From NCBI GenBank assembly GCA_964057225.1, contig OZ059897.1, positions 6,014,001 through 6,078,000 on the forward strand: a DNA stretch of 64,000 nucleotides, written 5' to 3'. The DNA comes from Auanema rhodensis (lineage: Eukaryota; Animalia; Nematoda). Within the stretch, counting starts at the first letter, position 1, and every line of letters starts with the position of its first letter. This document shows positions 18,046-63,930 of this stretch, piece by piece. Under the pieces are notes generated by a model that made no database searches, was not told the origin of the DNA, and worked only from the letters and a program-made list of their open reading frames with translations. The position numbers were made by a program, and so were the translations under genes.

Positions 18046-18497
18046 ACCCATCGCGCTAACCACCACCACCAGTCATAACCCACCCAGTTGACCATATACA
18101 GCTCGTCGTCGGAGCGATCCGACGATGACCTGGAAGATTGGTTGCCTGAATCCCTCTATACATAACCTTGGATAGCCTTGGCTATCACCCAGAGTCTGAC
18201 CGCAGTGTTCCGGTTTTCTGGATACGGTCGAAAAGCCCATTCATTGTTCAGAACACCAAAGCCCCATCATCATTTCATCTCATTTACATCTCATTCAATT
18301 CAAAACGATGCTTCTTCACTATTCATACTGACTGAGCTCACTGTGGGATATCAATGATTCATAGTGACGATAGGCAGACCATCTCATGTTTTTCCCACTT
18401 TTTTCGTGTCTTTCTTGTAATTCGTTGTAAACATCATCTGTTCGCTTTAGTAATTTTTATTATTTTCCAGATCAATCTCACTTTCTCAACACCGACA

Positions 18498-19274
18498 ATG
18501 TCTTCTGCCAGTATTTCTACCAAGAAACGTACCGCTCGTCGCTGTCTTTTCGGTCGCTCTGATTCTCAAGCCACTAACCAATGGCTTAGCGAGAAAATCA
18601 ATGAAAACATGATTCGTTTCCAAAAGGAGTATGGCTTTGACATCTTGAAAGATTGTCCTATTCCTGGAACATCTGACTACGAATACTATCCAATGATTGC
18701 TACCAGCGTTCCTGAGTTTTATCGCAGCAAGTTCATCAGCTCACCATCAAACATGAACACACCAACAAAGGAAAACGACTGTCTTAACACCTCCACTGGC
18801 TCTGTTATCTCTTCTTCTTCGTCTTCCGACGAGAGTGATATGAGCATGGACTATACTCTCTCACCTATTGAGCCAGCCAAGCGTACCTGTGCTACTCCTA
18901 AGAAAAGACAAGGAAAAGTCACCGGTAAGCATATGAAAACTTTTAAATCAAATTCTTCAATTATAATAATCTTTATGAATTTTTGAAATAACTTTTGACC
19001 TTTCGACTCAATTGCGCCGCCGCAACTGTTTTGCTTATTCATCTCTAGCAAGTTATGTGCGATAAACACAGCACCGACTTCACCACATGTTGACTAATCT
19101 CAATCAAAATCAAAATATATAAACATAAATTCAAAAATCTTCATAAACATTGACTTATTTTCTAATTTTTCAGACATGTTCCAAGTCCAACGCAAGAAAC
19201 GTCTTCAAAGATCTCCAAAAACCGTGGACATTGTGCTGCCAGCTCGCCGCACCTCAATCGAAGCTCGCATCTGA
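18498..19274 (+). CDS. cki-1: Cip/Kip cyclin-dependent kinase inhibitor, CKI-1-like (exons 18498-18924, 19174-19274)
   Basis: MSSASISTKKRTARRCLFGR (RxLFG cyclin docking), EYGFDILKDCPI and VPEFYR (CDK-inhibitory domain), C-terminal KKRQGKVT|DMFQVQRKKR PIP degron. Canonical G|gtaagc...tttttcag intron. The ORF-track start at 18354 lies upstream of the acceptor. Confidence 0.93.
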
Positions 19275-30788: not shown

Positions 30789-31885
30789 ATGGAGCCTCCC
30801 GTCACCAAACGTCAATCTGTTCGTAGGTGCTTATTTGGAAAACCTAATAAGGAACAAGTAAGGCTTAGTTTTTTTCTGTATTATATAATCTTTTTCTTTA
30901 AGATTGATGCATGGTTGACAAATGAGTTAGATCAAATTAATAAGGCTAAATCTGAGAAGTGGAACTTCGACTTTGTATCCGATAAACCTTTAAATAATAA
31001 TACTGATATTGAATTTGAGAGCATTCCCGCTACTGAGGTATTTCTTAATTTTCAAAACTTTTTATTCATTGTACTATATAGGTTCCTGCATTGTATCGTC
31101 CTCGTAAAAGATGCTCTAGGTCTTTACTGGATGTAGCATCCACTTCTTCCGAGCCTACAGGTCCGATAACCAGGTGAACAAGAAGTTCCTTTCTTTTTCT
31201 TATTATCTTTTTTTCAGATCATTTTCGCGGAGAGAAAACGCCAATGAATCAACTCCACAAAAAGAAAGCACGCTTAAACAAGCCAAATTGACCAGTAGGT
31301 GTTTTGAATCTTTGTTATCTTCGTTATCATTTTTTCATTTCTATAGTAATTTTTTTACCATTTCTTGTTGTGCCTTACTAAACTAATATCAAGATTAAAG
31401 TGGCAAATGCCGCTTTGACTTTTGCGATCAGATATCTCATAACTGTTTTCATGATTACGTGCTAATTAGGGGGCATCTGCTAGGTGTTGAGTAATACTTC
31501 GACATACCGGAACCCTTTCGGCATTGTCATAAAAAATACAAAAAGAGATTTATCTCCTTTTTTTCTATGTCGGGATATTTTCAGATTATTTGACAGTTCG
31601 GAAGAGACGATCTCTGGATATCTTACCTAAACGATCACAATCAGAATTGAAAAATAAACGGGTTGAACCACCCGGCAGTCCATTTAGGTGAGCTTTTGAG
31701 CTACAACTTTAAGCTTCCAAATATAATCTGAAAACATTATAAATATTTTCAGATTTGTTTCAAAAGAAGAAGAGTCACTTTTCGATTGTTCTAGTCCTGT
31801 TAAGTCGCCTAGAAAAAGTCCTATTAAAAGACGAAATGGTAGATCTTTAGTACTAGATAGTATGGTCCATGCAAAACGGACATAA
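30789..31885 (+). CDS. cki-2: Second Cip/Kip CDK inhibitor, CKI-2-like (exons 30789-30857, 30903-31037, 31082-31173, 31218-31294, 31585-31687, 31753-31885)
   Basis: MEPPVTKRQSVRRCLFGKPNKEQ|IDAWL...SEKWNFDFVSDKPL...FESIPATE|VPALYR, PIP-like KQAKLT|NYLTVRKRR, tail SPVKSPRKSPIKRR. All introns GT-AG and phase-consistent. The exact 3' end is uncertain (possible further splicing to an acceptor near 32011). Confidence 0.9.
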
Positions 31886-34800
31886 AACTTGAGCGCGTAC
31901 ATTGTTTTAAAATGGTGAGTTATATATATCAGTTGTCCTTCGTATTGTTTTGTGGCAGCCGATGCCAAAATTGCGCAATTTCTAGATCTGTATAATTCAG
32001 TTTTTTTTCCAGAGATTCGTTTTGTCTGTGAATAACTCGTGCGCATTCTCTGGTTTTTCAAGTTTTGTAGCTTTCTGGAGAGTTCGGACGTGAAGTTGTG
32101 ATCCCGATGTGTATCTAGTTTTTCCTCCAAATTTCAACAAATTTTATAACGAGAAAGTTTCAACTTGTTAGTTTCCGTCATCTATACATATTCCTGAAAA
32201 ATTACTTGTATTACTTGCCTTGCGTATATCTCTACGTCCTAAGAATCTCTTTATATTAATAGAGAAAGAGGTACCCTCTGTTTTATACTGTTATTTGTCG
32301 TTCTGGTTACTTGGTATGTAAATAATAATAATTGAAATACTGTAATAAATTTTTTTTTTAGTTTGGGTGTTGTAAATATTTGAAACAGATAGACAGATAC
32401 AAGCTTATATTAGAAATTTAATCTTTATATCCACAAGGTCTCTTGCAGAAATCTACGAAACTATGTCATAAAATCGAAAACAGGGATATGAGCAGCTTGA
32501 AACCTCAAAGTTGCGCATATTAATTGGCCTTCAAATAGTTTCAACATTATGTTGCTTTGAAAAATTTCCGGTTTTGCTTCAATTTTCGCCATATGTGGCC
32601 TATTGCCTTGACCATTCTCACTTTCACACTTCATGTTTTTGATTTAAAGTTTAGAATTGTTGACATAGTTTCAAATGGTGGAATATTTCATATGATGTTG
32701 CTTTAACTACAGTACTGTTGTTGTTTGTTATTTGGCACATATCTATGTATATTTATGAGAAATTCAGTTGCACAATAGCTGCTTATCAGATGATAGCAAA
32801 CGCTTGAGGCCGAGGCCGCTAGTTGCGCAACTTCATCGGACTCTTTTCCATTTTTAACTCAAATCTCGAACTGTCTCGATTATAACTGATACGAGATTGA
32901 AATATCTTTAGATTACTATGTTTGATGACATCCAAACTCAGGCATTGTCATATACATAAGAGCAAATCGATTAATATGCTAAATTTTCTTGAGGAGGGGT
33001 CCGCGAATATTTAACAGTAGCATCACATATTTCTTAGATATTGTACAGAAGTGATAAATCAGTTTTAAGTTTGTGGAGCTTATTCGCTAGAGCAGAAGAA
33101 GGGAAGTAATACAGCAGGAGAAGCCTGTTTTGTGCGGTATATTGTGCCGTATCAAGTGTTTTATCTTTCAAGTTTTAAGTAGTTATTGAGCATTTCTGCT
33201 CATGAAGATAAGAAACCAAAGCCATAAAACGAAGTTAATTTTACGTTTTTGTTTCAAGCTGCTATCGTTTATGGAAGCAACTACAACTGATGATCAGAAC
33301 TATGGGGAGAAAGAAGAAGAAGAAGAGAAAGAATGAGAAGAAGATGCCAGCTGGTATATAGATTGCCATGACTAGGTCTGTTGTTTCATTGAGAACTTTT
33401 CAAAGAGATGTTGCTTAGCAAATGGTGTGAGGAGTATGTGTTGTGTATACGTGAGACCCTCAGTGACCCTACTAAATGCATTGTTCACAATGGGTCGATT
33501 GCCTGTATTGTTCACAGCCATCTGAGACTTAAGCAGGTCATGTTAAACGAAAAGAAAGAAAAAAGTAAAGAGGGAAGTGAAAGGATAAACATTGGATTTA
33601 TACGAGCTTGGTATGAGTGTCATGGACTTTTCATATATCCGCTGTAACAGGCCTCCTTTATTATTTACGGGATTGTATTGTAAATTGCCCTTTGTTGAGT
33701 AAAATATAGAAAATTCTGCAAAATCAGTCATTAGAGAAGTACTGAAGCTACGATTCTTCTCTGAACTATCTTTTCCGAAAATGAAACAAAAAATTCTGCC
33801 ATTTAAATTGAATCAGTATGTAGTGTGAAGACACTGACTGTGGCTGCCTGCATAGTTGATAAATGACTTTCAGACTGTTTCCAACTCATCCTCATTAATG
33901 TCAGAACAAGTGAATGAAGTAGAAACAATTAAATGAAATTCTGACGATGAGGTTCACAACATCAGCATCGATGATATTCACAGAATTCGAAATGTGCCTG
34001 ACGTTTACAGTTTCATAGTTTGAACGAGCAAGTCTGACGACAACAATCTTTGAGATGATACATCTGAACCAGATTTCTAAAACCATTTAAGTAGGGATTA
34101 TCGTATGGCTCATTGAAATACACGAACCAGTCACCACACACATACATTCATATTCATACAAAAATACTTTTTTTTACAGTTTTCGAGTACTTTTGACTGA
34201 AAAGTAAAATAGACTTTAGTGAATAGGCATATCCATAGAGTCGGCACACATGATCCAATATGTAACTGCAAATGCCTTTGTATAGCCATGAGAAAATAGA
34301 AAATAATGGATCGTTTTGAGAAAGTCTATACATCCAGTCATGTCCTACCGTTAAGATGTCACGAAATACGATTTTTTGATGCAAAAATAAGTTCACAAAG
34401 TTGTTTTGTACTTTGATTACAACATATCCATTTGAGTTCTATGATATTTTGATCCCTTTTTCTTTGTTTCAACTTCTTTCTTTCTGTATCAAAGTGAAAG
34501 AATAACAGTTAGAGAAATGTGAGAATAGTTTATCTACAATGCCATAGGAAATCGTTGTACCCAGCTGTGCAAACGTACTAAACTTGACAACCACCAGATG
34601 GACGACTGTAGTAGCTGTAGAGTGTTTGTGGAATCGTTTTTTTTTTATTAAAATATATGATAACATATACATATTTCTAATTTAAAATAGTTTTTATAAT
34701 AAGTAAAGTTATATTGTATAAAATATTAGAATATTTCTCTTCTTTTGTCTTTTTAATATCAGCTAATCTGCATTTGATTTGAAATATTGCTGGCTGACAG

Positions 34801-50200: not shown

Positions 50201-51545
50201 AATTGTCAGTCTCTGTGTTTTCTTCATCTTTTAAAGTGATAGCAGTTGCTACATCCCATAAACCTATAAGTGATTTATATAATTGTAAGTCACCAAACAA
50301 AGTTCTTACGTAAAGCTTTAAGAACATTTCTGAAAATTACAAGAGTATCTTGTTTATCATTAATGACGCTCGTCTTCAACAAGTGCAGCATATACGAAGC
50401 AACAAATAATTCATCAAACTGAATAGATATGAAAAACTGGAGAGCAAAAGATGTTTACTTACTGTTTCTAATTCTCGACATTTAAACCAGGCGGTTAAAA
50501 GATTCAAAGCTTGATTCAAAGTATTTTGGCTAGTTATTTGAGACTCTATCTCAGTAACCAGTGAATGTTCTAGAAGTGATCTCAAGGCTTTCTGGTTGTA
50601 TCTAGGTGTTAATACATCGGCTGCAAAATATATAATTCAAATATTTAATCTTGTATTTCCTAACTTTTTTTGTGATAATTCTCCAGTATTGTTGTTGGGC
50701 GGATACTACCAGTAGATAGAGCAAACCGAGAAGGCTTAGCCAAAGATGGAGCTACGAATATCAGCCACACAGACAGATTTTCCTTTTTGTCTTAAACCAT
50801 TATTATTGGAAAGAGTATCAACTTTTAAAAACCTTTTACAATCAAATTTGGGAATATGAGATCTTGATTGGCACCGGATTTAAAACTAATTTCACAAGAT
50901 TTAAGACTTGCTTTGATAGCACAAATGCAACTGCAAATGTAGTGAGCTCTTTTGGTGGGATACACAACATTCACAAAATCTCTTTTTCCGAAAACGGCCT
51001 GAATTGTTATAATTATGAAAATATTTTTAATTAGTTTAACCTCTGGAATTTCCACGTATATTCTTTGGAAAACTTTTCCGTGTAACCGTTGCGACCTTAC
51101 CGACACGAAGTCCTGTAAAGCAAATTCATCATTGAAACTTCCAAGCAAGTATGACCTGTGGTTTGATCCATGTATAATCAGGCTCAGTACAAGGAGTTCG
51201 TTGAATAATACTATTAATATGGCCAAGTGGGAATTGAATACCATGTTTACCCCAGAAACTAACATCTTGGAACTTGAAAGATCTCAATTTAATTTTTGAA
51301 AACACACCATGCTTACATTTAATTTATGTTTGAATTTGGCAGATTTCAAGGAATTGATCACAGTTTTACCTAAACTTTCGCATTTTTCAGCGATAGCTTG
51401 ATGAGGAGTATGATCTACATCAAATTCTTGACACTAAATTTAAATATAAACCACTTGTATGTTATCGTTTCCCAAAAACCTGAAGTTTGAAAGTGCTTGA
51501 AATAGGCTTTTCCGCCATTTCTTCTGAAGTATAACTTTGTTTCAT
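47241..51545 (-). CDS. nol-6: Nucleolar protein 6 (NOL6/Nrap/Utp22), multi-exon
   Basis: VFGKRDFVNVVYPTKRAHY, PRYNQK, VLLDPTGYWNIA, LTVGP...FRDFWGKASQLRKFADTRICE, LPLMITNI, LEYSGKWGQD, PVVDFDP, final IKIIGKGLVKDILVL*. These are Nrap family motifs. Confidence 0.93.
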
Positions 51546-55170: not shown

Positions 55171-55885
<715 letters not shown>

Positions 55886-56002
55886 AAACAAACAAAACTA
55901 TGTAGATATAATATTTATGAATAAATTTAAAAAAACACTTAGTAGATTAAGTAATATAAAAAACCATACTACATTTAAAAAATATCCCGCGCTTCTGAAA
56001 TT

Positions 56003-58126
56003 TCAAAACTGGTCTGGAATGGTATTAAAACAAATTTCTGGTAAAACAACCCAGTAATATTCCGTTTTTTTGAACAATCCTGAAAAAAAAAACACAGTAT
56101 ACAATCACAGAAGAACAAGGACGAACCTAATAAAGCTTCAAATTTACCAGATTCATTAGACGCGGCAATGTTCAAACTATCCAAAGCATTAGATACACTA
56201 AATGTGAAAATATGTAAAAAAGAATAGCATTATTATAATATACTCATCGACTTCGGGGGGATATCGAGAATCCTGATCTCCGATTCTATCGGTTTCATTG
56301 AATTCCGAAGTAGTATGACTTCTATAATCACAAATTTTGAAACAAAAAAACTAAAGACATACCCTACTGTTGAACCAACATTACCGGAACACAAGACGTA
56401 AGTTCCAGGATTATAAAACGCTTGAATTCCTAGCATATCAAATTGGTTCATATATTCAAACAATATATGGCTAAAGTAAGATGCATATTCCAAAATTAAA
56501 ACTTTAAAGATCCTACAGTCTAGAGGCAGCATAAGCTAATGGGCATAGCATATTTGGAGCAGTAGGATCTCTAGCCAGTTCAGCATGGGAATCACAATAT
56601 GAATCAACATCAAAATACAATTCTGTCTAAAAGGAATCACCTGGGTTACTTTCAATTTTAAAATTTTTGCATAACAACCTCTAAAAGATTAGCGAAAATT
56701 TCAGCGCTCATATAATTTCGAATTACTGTATTATCGGGCTCTTCCTCATTTATTTTTAAAATCGTATCAGCTAGAGCTTGAATAGAAAATAAATCTAGAA
56801 TACAAGTAATAACTTCAACTATTTTCGTTTAAAATAGATCTTACTGTTATCGAAAGTCTCTTGTGCTACAGCAATAGGATATGACAAAGCTCTCAAACAA
56901 GATTTCTATAGAACATAAAACTTGCAATAAAATATGAAACAATCCACAAACCACTAATTCTTCATCTTGTTCATCATACACAACAATAGAATGTTTATGC
57001 ACAATTTCATGATATTTGTTCCAAGCTTCTTTGACATCCATTCCATTTTCTGGATTCAGTTTGTACTTGTATGCTAAACCGGAAAAAGTTTAAAAAAACG
57101 TATCAATAACACAAACTCACAGGCCTCTTTCATCTTATCTCTCATTTGCTGCTTCATATTAAAATTTGCATTCATAAACGATTGGGGAGAAAAAGAAACT
57201 ATTAAACTTTTTTTAGATAAAACTCCTAAAATATATATTCAAAAAAGTAAAGTTGAACAAGTCCTAGTGCATGCCCTGTTCAAAGTTAAAACTAATTATA
57301 GCTAATTCACAAGGATATGTATAATACAGTCCACGATCACTTAATATCGAACATGTTGGAATAATGGACACATAATGAAACTCTGTGGAGAGACATAATT
57401 CTAAAAATATTAATAAAAAGGATGAAGAGAGTTAAGAAGTTACTTTTAGGAGCTGATAAACATCGACGATACTTTAGTATGTCATACAATAAACGCCGTT
57501 TATTCACAATTAAATTTTGTACAGTCGTTGGTGTCGGAAGATCCTGCACATTTTGTATATTGGGAAAATTTATAGATTTGAGTGATGTATTAATATTTGA
57601 TTCAGAATAAGACTGACGATTACACTGAAAAACATAAAATAAGATATTCAAAAAATATATATTACATACTACACGATTTAGATCTTTAGTAGCTTTTTTA
57701 GAGAAGTTTGAAGAAGTACTAGGTTGGGGCCTATTAGCAACAGGCGTTCCCTGAGAGTTTGATATTGTAGCTGGAAGAGATTTTCCGCACTTTTTATAGT
57801 ACGCTTCCTTTTTTGACGGAGGAATGCTCTAAAGCAAAATTAAGAATGCTGCATATTTGAACTTTAATAAACTTGAGTAGGGAAAATGAATTTTAGAGTT
57901 AGCGAATTGTTCACTCACCATCCAAATTTCAGTAATAAGCTTGTTATGTCTTTCAGAAGAATCAAAGTATTCTCCATATTTCTCAAGAAATTTTGTACTA
58001 CCTTCTTCACAAAACCACAAATAGTAAGGCTGCTGCTTACCTCTAAAATGGAAACAGGCTCAGTATGCATTATGTTCAAACTTACTTTGGTTTATTATTA
58101 TGTTGATTGCGATCTTGTTTCCTCAT
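56003..58126 (-). CDS. MAEL: Maelstrom-family protein (N-terminal HMG-box-like + MAEL domain), MAEL/RDE-10-like, roughly 500 aa, ~14 exons
   Basis: HMG-like KPKGKQQPYYLWFCEE...LITEIWM|SIPPSKKEAYYKKC. MAEL domain: EFHYVSIIPTC...YPCELAIISFNFEQG, VVYDEQDEELV|KSCLRAL, YCDSH...LCPLAYAASRL with the E-C-H-C Zn motif. The model needs one GC-AG intron (57226-57274). The stop is 56003 if the last 47-nt intron is spliced, otherwise 55975. Confidence 0.8.
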
Positions 58127-59586
58127 GTTATGCGTTTTTGCTACAATGAACCATCGTCATTACAAAACCGATAGAATCTTAAAGCGTTCAGATGAACCTA
58201 CAAACTTTAACAATGGTGGAATGTTCCAAATTCTCAACAGAGCATGCTTTCATAAAAATGTCTAACAGTGAATAAGCTTTAACCGTTTTCATGTATACTG
58301 TTCAGAATGCTGACATATGTTTATTGAATAAATGTTCCAAAGAAAATTCATTGATTGGCAGAGGATATCATTCACTTGATCCAGTTGAACAGGACATGAT
58401 CGATGGATAGATTTGGCTAGTTGTCTGCGCAGGTTGCAACCATCTCTTCCAGCCTGTCATGGCTTCTACAATCACATTGTCCAAATTGAATTAAACGGCA
58501 AAGAGTCTAGGATTATTCCATATCTAAACCTATTTGGCATAGAAAGGATTCTATGAATTCTATTTCAATCAATTTGATTGTCTTTTTCGACATGGATCAT
58601 CATCCAATTGACTTGCCATTTTGTCAACGTTGTTCATCCCGCTTTTCATCATCCGGTTTTCCGTGATCCTCATCTGTCAAAATTCAATGTTAGATTTTCA
58701 CCGGGCGATTCCATTATTTCCTCTCATTCTTCACTTTTACCTCTCGCATATTCTTTCCTCTGGAAGATTCTGTTATTGCACACGACGTCACGTGCCTTCA
58801 TCATTTTTCCATGTGTGGTTGTCGGTCAAGAATATAACCACGGTTGACATTGACTACTTGCCACCCATAGACTGAATTATTCTTGATAGTCTGTCAAGAG
58901 TGGTAATTATGCTCTTATAGGAAATAAATCGTTGCAAAAGAAGAACTGGACTCCACGGTCACCGACATCATCGACCAAACAATACCCGGCTTCACCTTTG
59001 TCTGTTCTATACGAGGAATACACTCTTTTCTTGTCTTCTTGCTAAGCATCTCCTCTTTTCATCTCTACTCACCCAAAAAAATTATGCTTCATTTTCGCTG
59101 TTTTCGTTCCAATGATGTTTCGTGCTCTGGGTGCCTGTGACAGTCGTTGTAATGCCTATATTGGTGATGGGTCGCCACGGTTGTGACGACAACCCCGAGA
59201 ACCTTCCAAACTACTTGGAACTGATGTGGTCCATTTTCGCATTAACTTCTTCGAACTTTCGGAAACAAGTAGGATTGCAGCGAATGACTTCAATACTTTT
59301 GCTCAACCAGCCTTCTCTTAAAACTGATTGATATAAGAATTAGTAAATTCCTAATAGGAGTCACTGCGACCGGCTGTACTGTGTAACATGACGTAGTTAC
59401 ACACCCACACTTTCAAATCCAATTTGGGCGTCTTGAGTTTTCTGTCAACATTATTTGTTTCATTTATTTCTCTTTATTCAATAATATTTGTTTTATAAAA
59501 GTTATACATGCAAGTGTAATTCAATCGTTTATGATTGCTTTGTTTATGATTTTTCTGGTTATTGCTAACAACAATTTATGTTGCAG

Positions 59587-62823: not shown

Positions 62824-63930
62824 CTAATAACCGGGTGGGGTACGAGGGATTGGGCAATGTTCGCAGGATCCTGGCTCTCCAGTTGGTCCACGTGGTCCTT
62901 CTTGTCCTTGTGGGCCTGGAGCTCCTTGTGGTCCTGGTCTTCCAGCATCTCCTTGAGGTCCGATTGGTCCCTCTTGGCTTCCTCCGTCAAGTCCAGCTTC
63001 TCCGCGTGGTCCTGGTGGTCCACGTGGTCCTGGTCTTCCGGCAGGTCCAGCTGGTCCGTTAACCTGAAGCAATATTATTTTATATTTTGTAGAAAATATT
63101 AAATCCTACTTGGATAACTCTTCCTGGAGCTCCACGTGGCCCGCTAACACCTTGTCTTCCTGGCATTCCCATGGTTCCTGGTGGTCCTTGCATTCCATTT
63201 TCTCCGTTCTTTCCGTCTCTTCCAGCTTCTCCGGCAGCTCCTTTAGGTCCCTAGAATCACAAAAATGAAGTTTGCAGTTTTAGTTACATTAAAAGCTCAC
63301 TTGTGGTCCCTTAGCTCCTCCCATTCCTTGTGGTCCTGGTGGTCCAGGTGGGCAGATGATGCATGGTTCGTTTTGGATGGCGGATTCAAGAAGGCTTCCG
63401 TCTCTTCCGCTGCTTCCGTCATTTCCGGGAAGACCATCTCTTCCGTCATCTCCGTTGTCTCCTGGTGGTCCTGGTGGTCCAGCTGGTCCTTGTTGGCATC
63501 CGCAGCAAGTTGGAGCAGCATCACTGTTAGCGACTGGAGCAACTCCGTATCCTATAGACAAATAATATTTACAAAGGTATTCAGAAAAGTAAGGGCACCT
63601 CCAGCTCCTCCATTAGATGGGTAAGCAGCTGGCTGTGGAGAGCTTCCATACTGTCTCTTAGCACGCTGGAAGGATGGAGCATCGATGTGATGGATTTCTG
63701 CCCACATATCACGAGCTCTGGTCTGAACAATACGATAATTAGATTCCATTTTCAGAAAGTTGATTCTGTACCTTGCAGAAATCAGTCTCAATGATGAGAT
63801 GGGACTGGAAGTTAGCTACATAGCTATAGAGCATGGGCAAAGTGACGACGGCAGCGATGACAGCTACAGTACTGACGACAATGGCGAAAAAGGCCACTCG
63901 ACGAAGCTCACGGTGCTCCGACGTCTCCAT
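62824..63930 (-). CDS. sqt-2: Nematode cuticle collagen, SQT-2-like
   Basis: Col_cuticle_N region with TM segment ([15 protein letters not shown]...), furin site RAKR, CCGC cluster, Gly-X-Y blocks, C-terminal [13 protein letters not shown]. Collagen identity is certain; the sqt-2 orthology is from memory. Confidence 0.9.

Follow-up and report, generated by a model that had tools for sequence, protein, structure and literature searches.

The 64,000-nucleotide stretch of Auanema rhodensis DNA analyzed here (the window) holds on its minus strand a gene that is real, spliced and expressed. The protein of 492 residues that it specifies is very probably related by descent to the Maelstrom (MAEL) domain family, as judged from its residues and their spacing. 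The best account of the whole, and a likely one, is an expressed nematode Maelstrom-family protein with an N-terminal HMG-like box, an ECHC-type MAEL domain and a role in RNA silencing. Maelstrom is a conserved, poorly understood factor of the piRNA pathway; PIWI has been lost repeatedly within the nematode phylum. RDE-10, which acts in siRNA amplification, is to our knowledge the only nematode relative of Maelstrom that has been studied functionally.

The gene cannot be read directly from the genome. Across the gene region, the longest open reading frame on either strand is at most 104 aa, and the initial annotation, which described a gene hidden by splicing and contained in no single ORF, saw this correctly. 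In three-frame translation, the coding pieces on the minus strand switch frame at short AT-rich gaps that end in ttttag or tttcag; joined, they give a 14-exon model (58126..56003; 1479 nt, 492 codons plus TGA) that keeps phase at every junction, from the ATG at 58126 to the TGA at 56003 (see the table). The 13 introns are 41-90 nt long, and 12 of them are GT-AG; intron 3 (45 nt) is in frame and without a stop. The odd one is intron 5 (49 nt), a GC-AG intron: its three possible registers read CA..GG, GC..AG and GG..TA, none with GT. An alternative donor in exon 5 (TTA|GTTTTA) was considered and rejected, because the transcript contigs carry the GC-AG junction instead. Upstream, in-frame stops precede the start codon at 58126, and the leader includes three further ATGs (58245, 58160 and 58154), out of frame or soon terminated; these could serve as uORFs controlling translation.

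Features of the Maelstrom-like gene, in positions of the window
Feature	Position	Strand	Support
5' leader	58127..58250	-	contigs
Exon 1, residues 1-14: start codon, basic N-terminus	58086..58126	-	model and contigs
Exon 2, residues 14-55: first two thirds of putative HMG-like box (PYYLWF ... EIW)	57919..58042	-	model and contigs; box by eye
Exon 3, residues 56-108: end of putative HMG-like box (SKKEAYYKK), then Ser/Thr/Pro/Asn-rich linker	57670..57828	-	model and contigs
Exon 4, residues 109-169: linker	57444..57624	-	model and contigs
Exon 5, residues 169-211: start of MAEL-like domain, FHYVSI, YPCELAIISF with Glu200	57275..57400	-	model, contigs, consensus
Intron 5, GC-AG, non-canonical	57226..57274	-	removed in 4/4 runs
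Exons 6-7, residues 211-286: middle of MAEL-like domain	57225-57121 and 57073-56952	-	model and contigs
Exons 8-9, residues 287-345: KSCLRAL and LFSIQAL blocks	56905-56845 and 56794-56679	-	model, contigs, alignment
Exon 10, residues 346-382: CDSH...LCPLA, Cys356/His359/Cys373	56517..56626	-	model, contigs, consensus
Exon 11, residues 382-418: last MAEL-like block DMLGIQAFYNPGTYV (human: LFGIQLTEAHVP)	56363..56470	-	model, contigs, alignment
Exons 12-14, residues 418-492 and TGA: acidic/Ser-rich tail	56321-56244, 56197-56127 and 56079-56003	-	model and contigs
3' UTR, to the reach of the longest contig	55942..56002	-	contigs

The splicing itself is observed. Four public runs each yield one spliced contig of 1591-1647 nt; aligned to 55700-58400, every one of them leaves out precisely the 13 introns of the model, shows neither mismatches nor other gaps, and runs from about 58226-58250 at the 5' end to about 55942 at the 3' end. 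Confirmation of the junctions by RNA-seq, the check proposed with the initial annotation, is thus in hand for 13/13 junctions. The four runs come from one study; therefore, they count as one independent support. Their label, ‘RNA?’, is a guess, and it is because the contigs are spliced that their source can be taken as processed RNA or cDNA. The share of 31-mers sampled from the gene's stretch that is present in the runs (49%) is close to what fully spliced mRNA would hold, as about 51% of these words lie wholly inside exons by arithmetic. No spliced-leader sequence was seen at the contig ends.

Assignment to the family starts from the published definition of the MAEL domain by Zhang et al. 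(2008; PMC2628886), which provides the complete alignment together with its 75% consensus (Additional file 1). Two blocks of this consensus were turned into residue-class patterns. The classes used for the patterns are those of Chroma. The consensus block that surrounds the conserved Glu (hPhElth.pa) was used unchanged, and YPCELAIISF in exon 5 agrees with it at 9/9 constrained positions. For a protein of this composition, a chance match is expected at 1.2e-6 per position, or 5.8e-4 per 492-aa protein, and exon 5 supplies the sole match in the window, whose six frames together comprise 128,000 residues. The consensus for the C..H...C block (CpaHpp ... hCsb) is not fully matched by exon 10; this pattern was relaxed post hoc at two positions (Cp.H.p, a loop of 5-14 residues, hCsb). 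In the relaxed form CDSH...LCPL of exon 10 is the sole match in the window's six frames, with a chance of 3.3e-4 of falling 120-200 residues past the Glu block. By themselves, the two patterns would be expected by chance about 0.1 times in a genome of ~130 Mb, and are therefore suggestive, not conclusive; for this reason, it is the further collinear blocks, recognized by eye, that must give the match its significance.

At the level of single residues, GAA (57308-57306), TGT (56596-56594), CAT (56587-56585) and TGC (56545-56543) specify E200, C356, H359 and C373 of the model. The initial annotation had named these same four codons as zinc ligands, and the peptide blocks that it quoted for the gene are likewise there: FHYVSI..YPCELAIISFNFEQG, VKSCLRAL and CDSH...LCPLA, in exons 5, 7/8 and 10. 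The ECHC residues are thus present, in order and with spacing typical of the family. Of the EHHCHC set, the two extra His cannot be recognized: at the place of F-H-x-F in other members the protein reads SLIVSF, and at that of T-H-x-I it reads SYKY. As these two His are not zinc ligands, their absence marks a variant, not an exclusion from the family. At the first strand the protein has V-S-I, where protist members keep the exonuclease D-x-E and metazoan members have L-N-I (Zhang 2008 alignment). Read from the residues, V-S-I at the former D-x-E site is the metazoan ‘active-site switch’ state; with the acidic DxE replaced, DnaQ-H-type exonuclease chemistry is not expected.

The remaining anchors fall into line with those of known Maelstrom proteins, and their spacings differ by no more than 1-3 residues from those in fly or human. 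From the Glu to the Val before x-S/W-C-L there are 86 residues (human 85, fly 88); from the Cys of the V-x-S-C-L block to the first zinc Cys, 67 (human 57, fly 66); and from the Glu to the first zinc Cys, 156 (fly 157). The loop from the His to the last Cys is longer, with 14 residues as against 8 in fly and mammals. Aligned by eye, KSCLRAL is collinear with fly KSCFRYL, and LFSIQAL with fly VFDIQYL, in a longer block that sets LFSIQALADTIL against fly VFDIQYLLFIL; LYFDVDSYCDSH lies in line with fly DFFEF-TAGIA-C-QYH, LCPLAYAASRL with insect YCPLSRCIRW, and DMLGIQAF with human LFGIQLT (LGIQ against FGIQ).

The flanks of the domain are less sharply defined. Residues ~14-75 (KPKGKQQPYYLWF ... 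ITEIWMSIPPSKKEAYYKK), interrupted by intron 2, show to the eye a pattern like that of an HMG box: the aromatics of PYYLWF, a Trp ~30-34 residues on, and K-K-E-x-Y (SKKEAYY) 11 past the Trp. This pattern seems to fit human MAEL as well, which is a lead. Exons 2 and 3 gave no HMG match when searched singly in Pfam and PDB. On balance, the by-eye pattern points to an HMG-like box at the N-terminus somewhat more than it points away from one. The full HMG plus MAEL architecture claimed for the protein in the initial annotation is supported in part: the Glu consensus is complete, C-x2-H...C is matched in relaxed form, and the box is recognized by eye, with blank searches of its two exons. Between box and domain, residues 76-170 form a linker rich in Ser, Asn, Thr and Pro, which exceeds its fly and mammalian counterparts in length. 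Beyond the domain, the tail is acidic and Ser-rich, and aromatic-hydrophobic at its very end. A C-terminal extension of ~110 aa had been noted as unassigned; the tail does lack a family match, but comes to only ~85 aa, because the alignment to the last part of the MAEL domain extends into exon 11. As the C-terminal tails of fly and mammalian Mael measure ~90-130 aa, one of this length is not unusual.

Database searches bear on the assignment less than might be supposed. Family searches were run on single exons (20-60 aa) and on a stop-free piece of 128 aa that joins exon 3, intron 3 and exon 4. In Pfam, every exon of at least 20 aa and the 128-aa piece, searched singly, gave no family match at E <= 10; InvH and CarA_N, which came up exon-wise, are noise. 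Solved structures of MAEL domains exist; phmmer against the PDB with exons 2, 3, 5, 6, 7, 9, 10 and 11, taken singly, returned no significant match, and the designed TIM barrels and gp120 that appeared did so at E > 0.1, again noise. Exhaustive phmmer with exon 5 against 1.84 billion representatives found no relative. The word search with the 128-aa piece, which reaches proteins up to 1.75 times the length of the query exon, found no public protein; ESM Atlas gave no usable match for exon 5 alone, nor JGI metagenome loci a relative for exon 4 alone. Exact-product look-ups for three ORFs of the window found none on record. The gene's own protein appears to be missing from the public protein sets searched.

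The only library matches to exon 5, P0001 and P0002, were rejected as spurious. These ‘proteins’ of 624 aa and 801 aa consist of tandem repeats of ~48 residues in which Cys, Trp and Arg abound, and look like translated satellite DNA; they illustrate the repeat artefacts that short queries draw.

HMMER filters pass at roughly P < 1e-5, and 35-41 aa taken from a domain that evolves fast fall short of this. Blank searches therefore carry little weight against the family, given the low power of 20-60 aa queries; the HMMER check against Pfam put forward at the outset, blank exon by exon, is to be read in the same way. The earlier reading of the gene as Mael is borne out in its gene model, junctions, motif residues, Glu consensus and spacings, and lacks a significant HMM, pairwise or fold match in exon-wise searches.

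The window (32.5% G+C) gave no match in tRNA and Rfam scans and no paralogue of the gene in tblastn of its exons. A 210-aa ORF with an ATG at 18354-18986 (+) matches the cyclin-dependent kinase inhibitor domain (PF02234, E 6e-10) and is by its sequence a cki-1/cki-2-like gene, for which the public collection lists no exact product. On the minus strand, ORF 46334-46732 matches the snurportin-1 m3G-cap-binding domain (PF21974, E 8e-23); two exon-sized ORFs match Nrap domain 1 (50825-51265, E 2e-6) and, below the Pfam cut-off, Vma12 (31684-32130, E 1e-4); and Gly-Pro-rich ORFs at 62824-63561, in at least two exons, are typical of a nematode cuticle collagen. None of these neighbors points to a small-RNA gene cluster. 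Another transcript is represented by contigs of 520-544 nt that reach left of 55700 and stop 70-90 nt from the 3' end of the gene (55700-55875); an ORF on the plus strand ends at 55885. As this ORF end lies there and the neighboring contigs are 70-90 nt away, the two genes may run toward each other and be separated by hardly any spacer.

Among nematode relatives, the protein might be the 1:1 orthologue of C. elegans RDE-10, with the N-terminal box simply RDE-10's own N-terminus; it would then act in RNAi with an RDE-11-like RING protein, in amplification of secondary siRNA, and not in the piRNA pathway. This has somewhat less than an even chance of being right, and leaves the family as in the preferred account, competing with it on pathway and novelty. 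The host is a nematode, and among nematode proteins with a Maelstrom domain RDE-10 is the one of known function. The length ahead of the domain also agrees: in PMC11335349, Ser228 of RDE-10 is said to be near the ECHC motif, which suggests ~200 residues before the RDE-10 Glu, as here (E200), compared with ~130 in fly. Against the orthology, the exon 5 search gave no Caenorhabditis protein at E <= 0.001. The map adds a weak argument on the same side: the neighbors here are the CDK-inhibitor gene and, just past the window, cactin. In C. elegans the CDK-inhibitor and cactin genes lie on chromosome II, and rde-10 on I. A different nematode lineage is also on record, as MAEL-domain proteins were listed by Zhang et al. 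(2008; PMC2628886) for C. elegans (gi 3873737, domain at 525-803), C. briggsae (gi 39591559) and Brugia malayi (gi 170586486). Nematode proteins with the domain have thus been known since 2008; the premise that C. elegans has RDE-10 as its MAEL-domain RNAi factor is incomplete in omitting gi 3873737. That lineage is conserved across distant nematodes, and its Brugia domain starts at residue 160, near the start here. Nevertheless, orthology of the present gene to it is very unlikely: its three members share SVQTYGNIDG, whereas FHYVSI...YPCEL of the gene is closer to insect and vertebrate sequences; the Glu is missing in the two Caenorhabditis sequences; and the C. elegans protein exceeds 800 residues, with the domain C-terminal.

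The more radical alternative is that the gene encodes a lineage-restricted nematode protein unrelated to Maelstrom, with motifs that are chance resemblances picked out of a genome-wide reading. The blank exon-wise searches would fit this, as would the genome-wide expectation of ~0.1 for two patterns, one of them relaxed post hoc. The blanks, however, are expected of 20-60 aa queries; the Glu consensus was taken unchanged from the 2008 paper and matched completely; and five more blocks follow in the same order, at most 1-3 residues off the spacing in fly or human. Chance resemblance is improbable on this evidence, and a Maelstrom-family protein is the reading carried forward here.

What such a protein might do can be sketched by analogy. 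A short basic N-terminus and an HMG-like box (~14-75), putatively of three helices, would be followed by the low-complexity linker and by a MAEL domain (~172-405) of the metazoan type, in which the DEDDh exonuclease residues appear to be gone; the acidic tail of ~85 residues would close the protein. By its relatives the domain would take an RNase H-like fold, with E200, C356, H359 and C373 seemingly in place to hold a zinc ion through the ECHC motif. By analogy with relatives in fly, silkworm, mouse and C. elegans, the domain may bind, or weakly cleave, single-stranded RNA: ssRNA endonuclease activity of insect MAEL is cited in PMC11335349, as is RDE-10 as a Maelstrom-domain factor for secondary siRNA. 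The HMG-like box might add affinity for structured RNA, which the HMG box of mouse MAEL binds according to the title of PMC4373776. Within a complex for small-RNA silencing, the protein could then serve as a scaffold, or it could have weak endoribonuclease activity. For a nematode the most likely setting would be an RDE-10-like role, in amplification of secondary siRNA on target transcripts; silencing of transposons by piRNA is conceivable, if the species keeps PIWI.

At present these results amount to an unannotated gene with good support and a probable family assignment, and to no new mechanism. If true, a nematode protein with the full HMG plus MAEL layout would link Maelstrom and RDE-10 and would give a handle on the rewiring of a piRNA-pathway module in nematodes. 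Two evolutionary readings may be put forward together, quite tentatively and as less likely than not: the gene might be an ancestral, canonical-type Mael (HMG-like box plus ECHC MAEL domain), of a kind not described from model nematodes, retained in a PIWI-independent silencing branch, or an RDE-10 orthologue showing that RDE-10 descends from an HMG-Mael. The literature searched contains no mention that was found of an HMG box in RDE-10, or of an HMG-MAEL protein in nematodes; this is an absence of mention. RDE-10 itself has been described since 2012 (PMC11335349).

The comparison with known systems can be drawn at several distances. Farthest off are the DnaQ-H 3'-5' exonucleases, such as ERI-1, the fold proposed as ancestral to the MAEL domain in PMC2628886; these have an acidic DxE at the first strand, where the gene has V-S-I. 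The nematode proteins gi 3873737, gi 39591559 and gi 170586486 share the MAEL domain and the C..H...C block with the gene, but differ in the first block (SVQTYGNIDG), in loss of the Glu in Caenorhabditis and, in C. elegans, in a domain placed at 525-803. The Maelstrom proteins themselves (Drosophila mael, mouse and human MAEL, Bombyx Mael) have the same layout of N-terminal HMG-type box (by eye in the present case), MAEL domain and C-terminal tail; the Glu-Cys-His-Cys order is alike, there is collinearity of the KSC[LF]R.L, F.IQ.L, C..H and C[PA]L[AS] blocks, and both lack the DEDDh residues. The present protein departs from them in a linker between box and domain that is ~60 residues longer, in the loop of 14 instead of 8 residues before the last Cys, and in the missing pair of additional His from EHHCHC. 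C. elegans RDE-10 (PF13017) likewise comes from a nematode and combines a Maelstrom domain with an ECHC motif, and about as many residues seem to precede its domain; by analogy, it is the most plausible functional counterpart.
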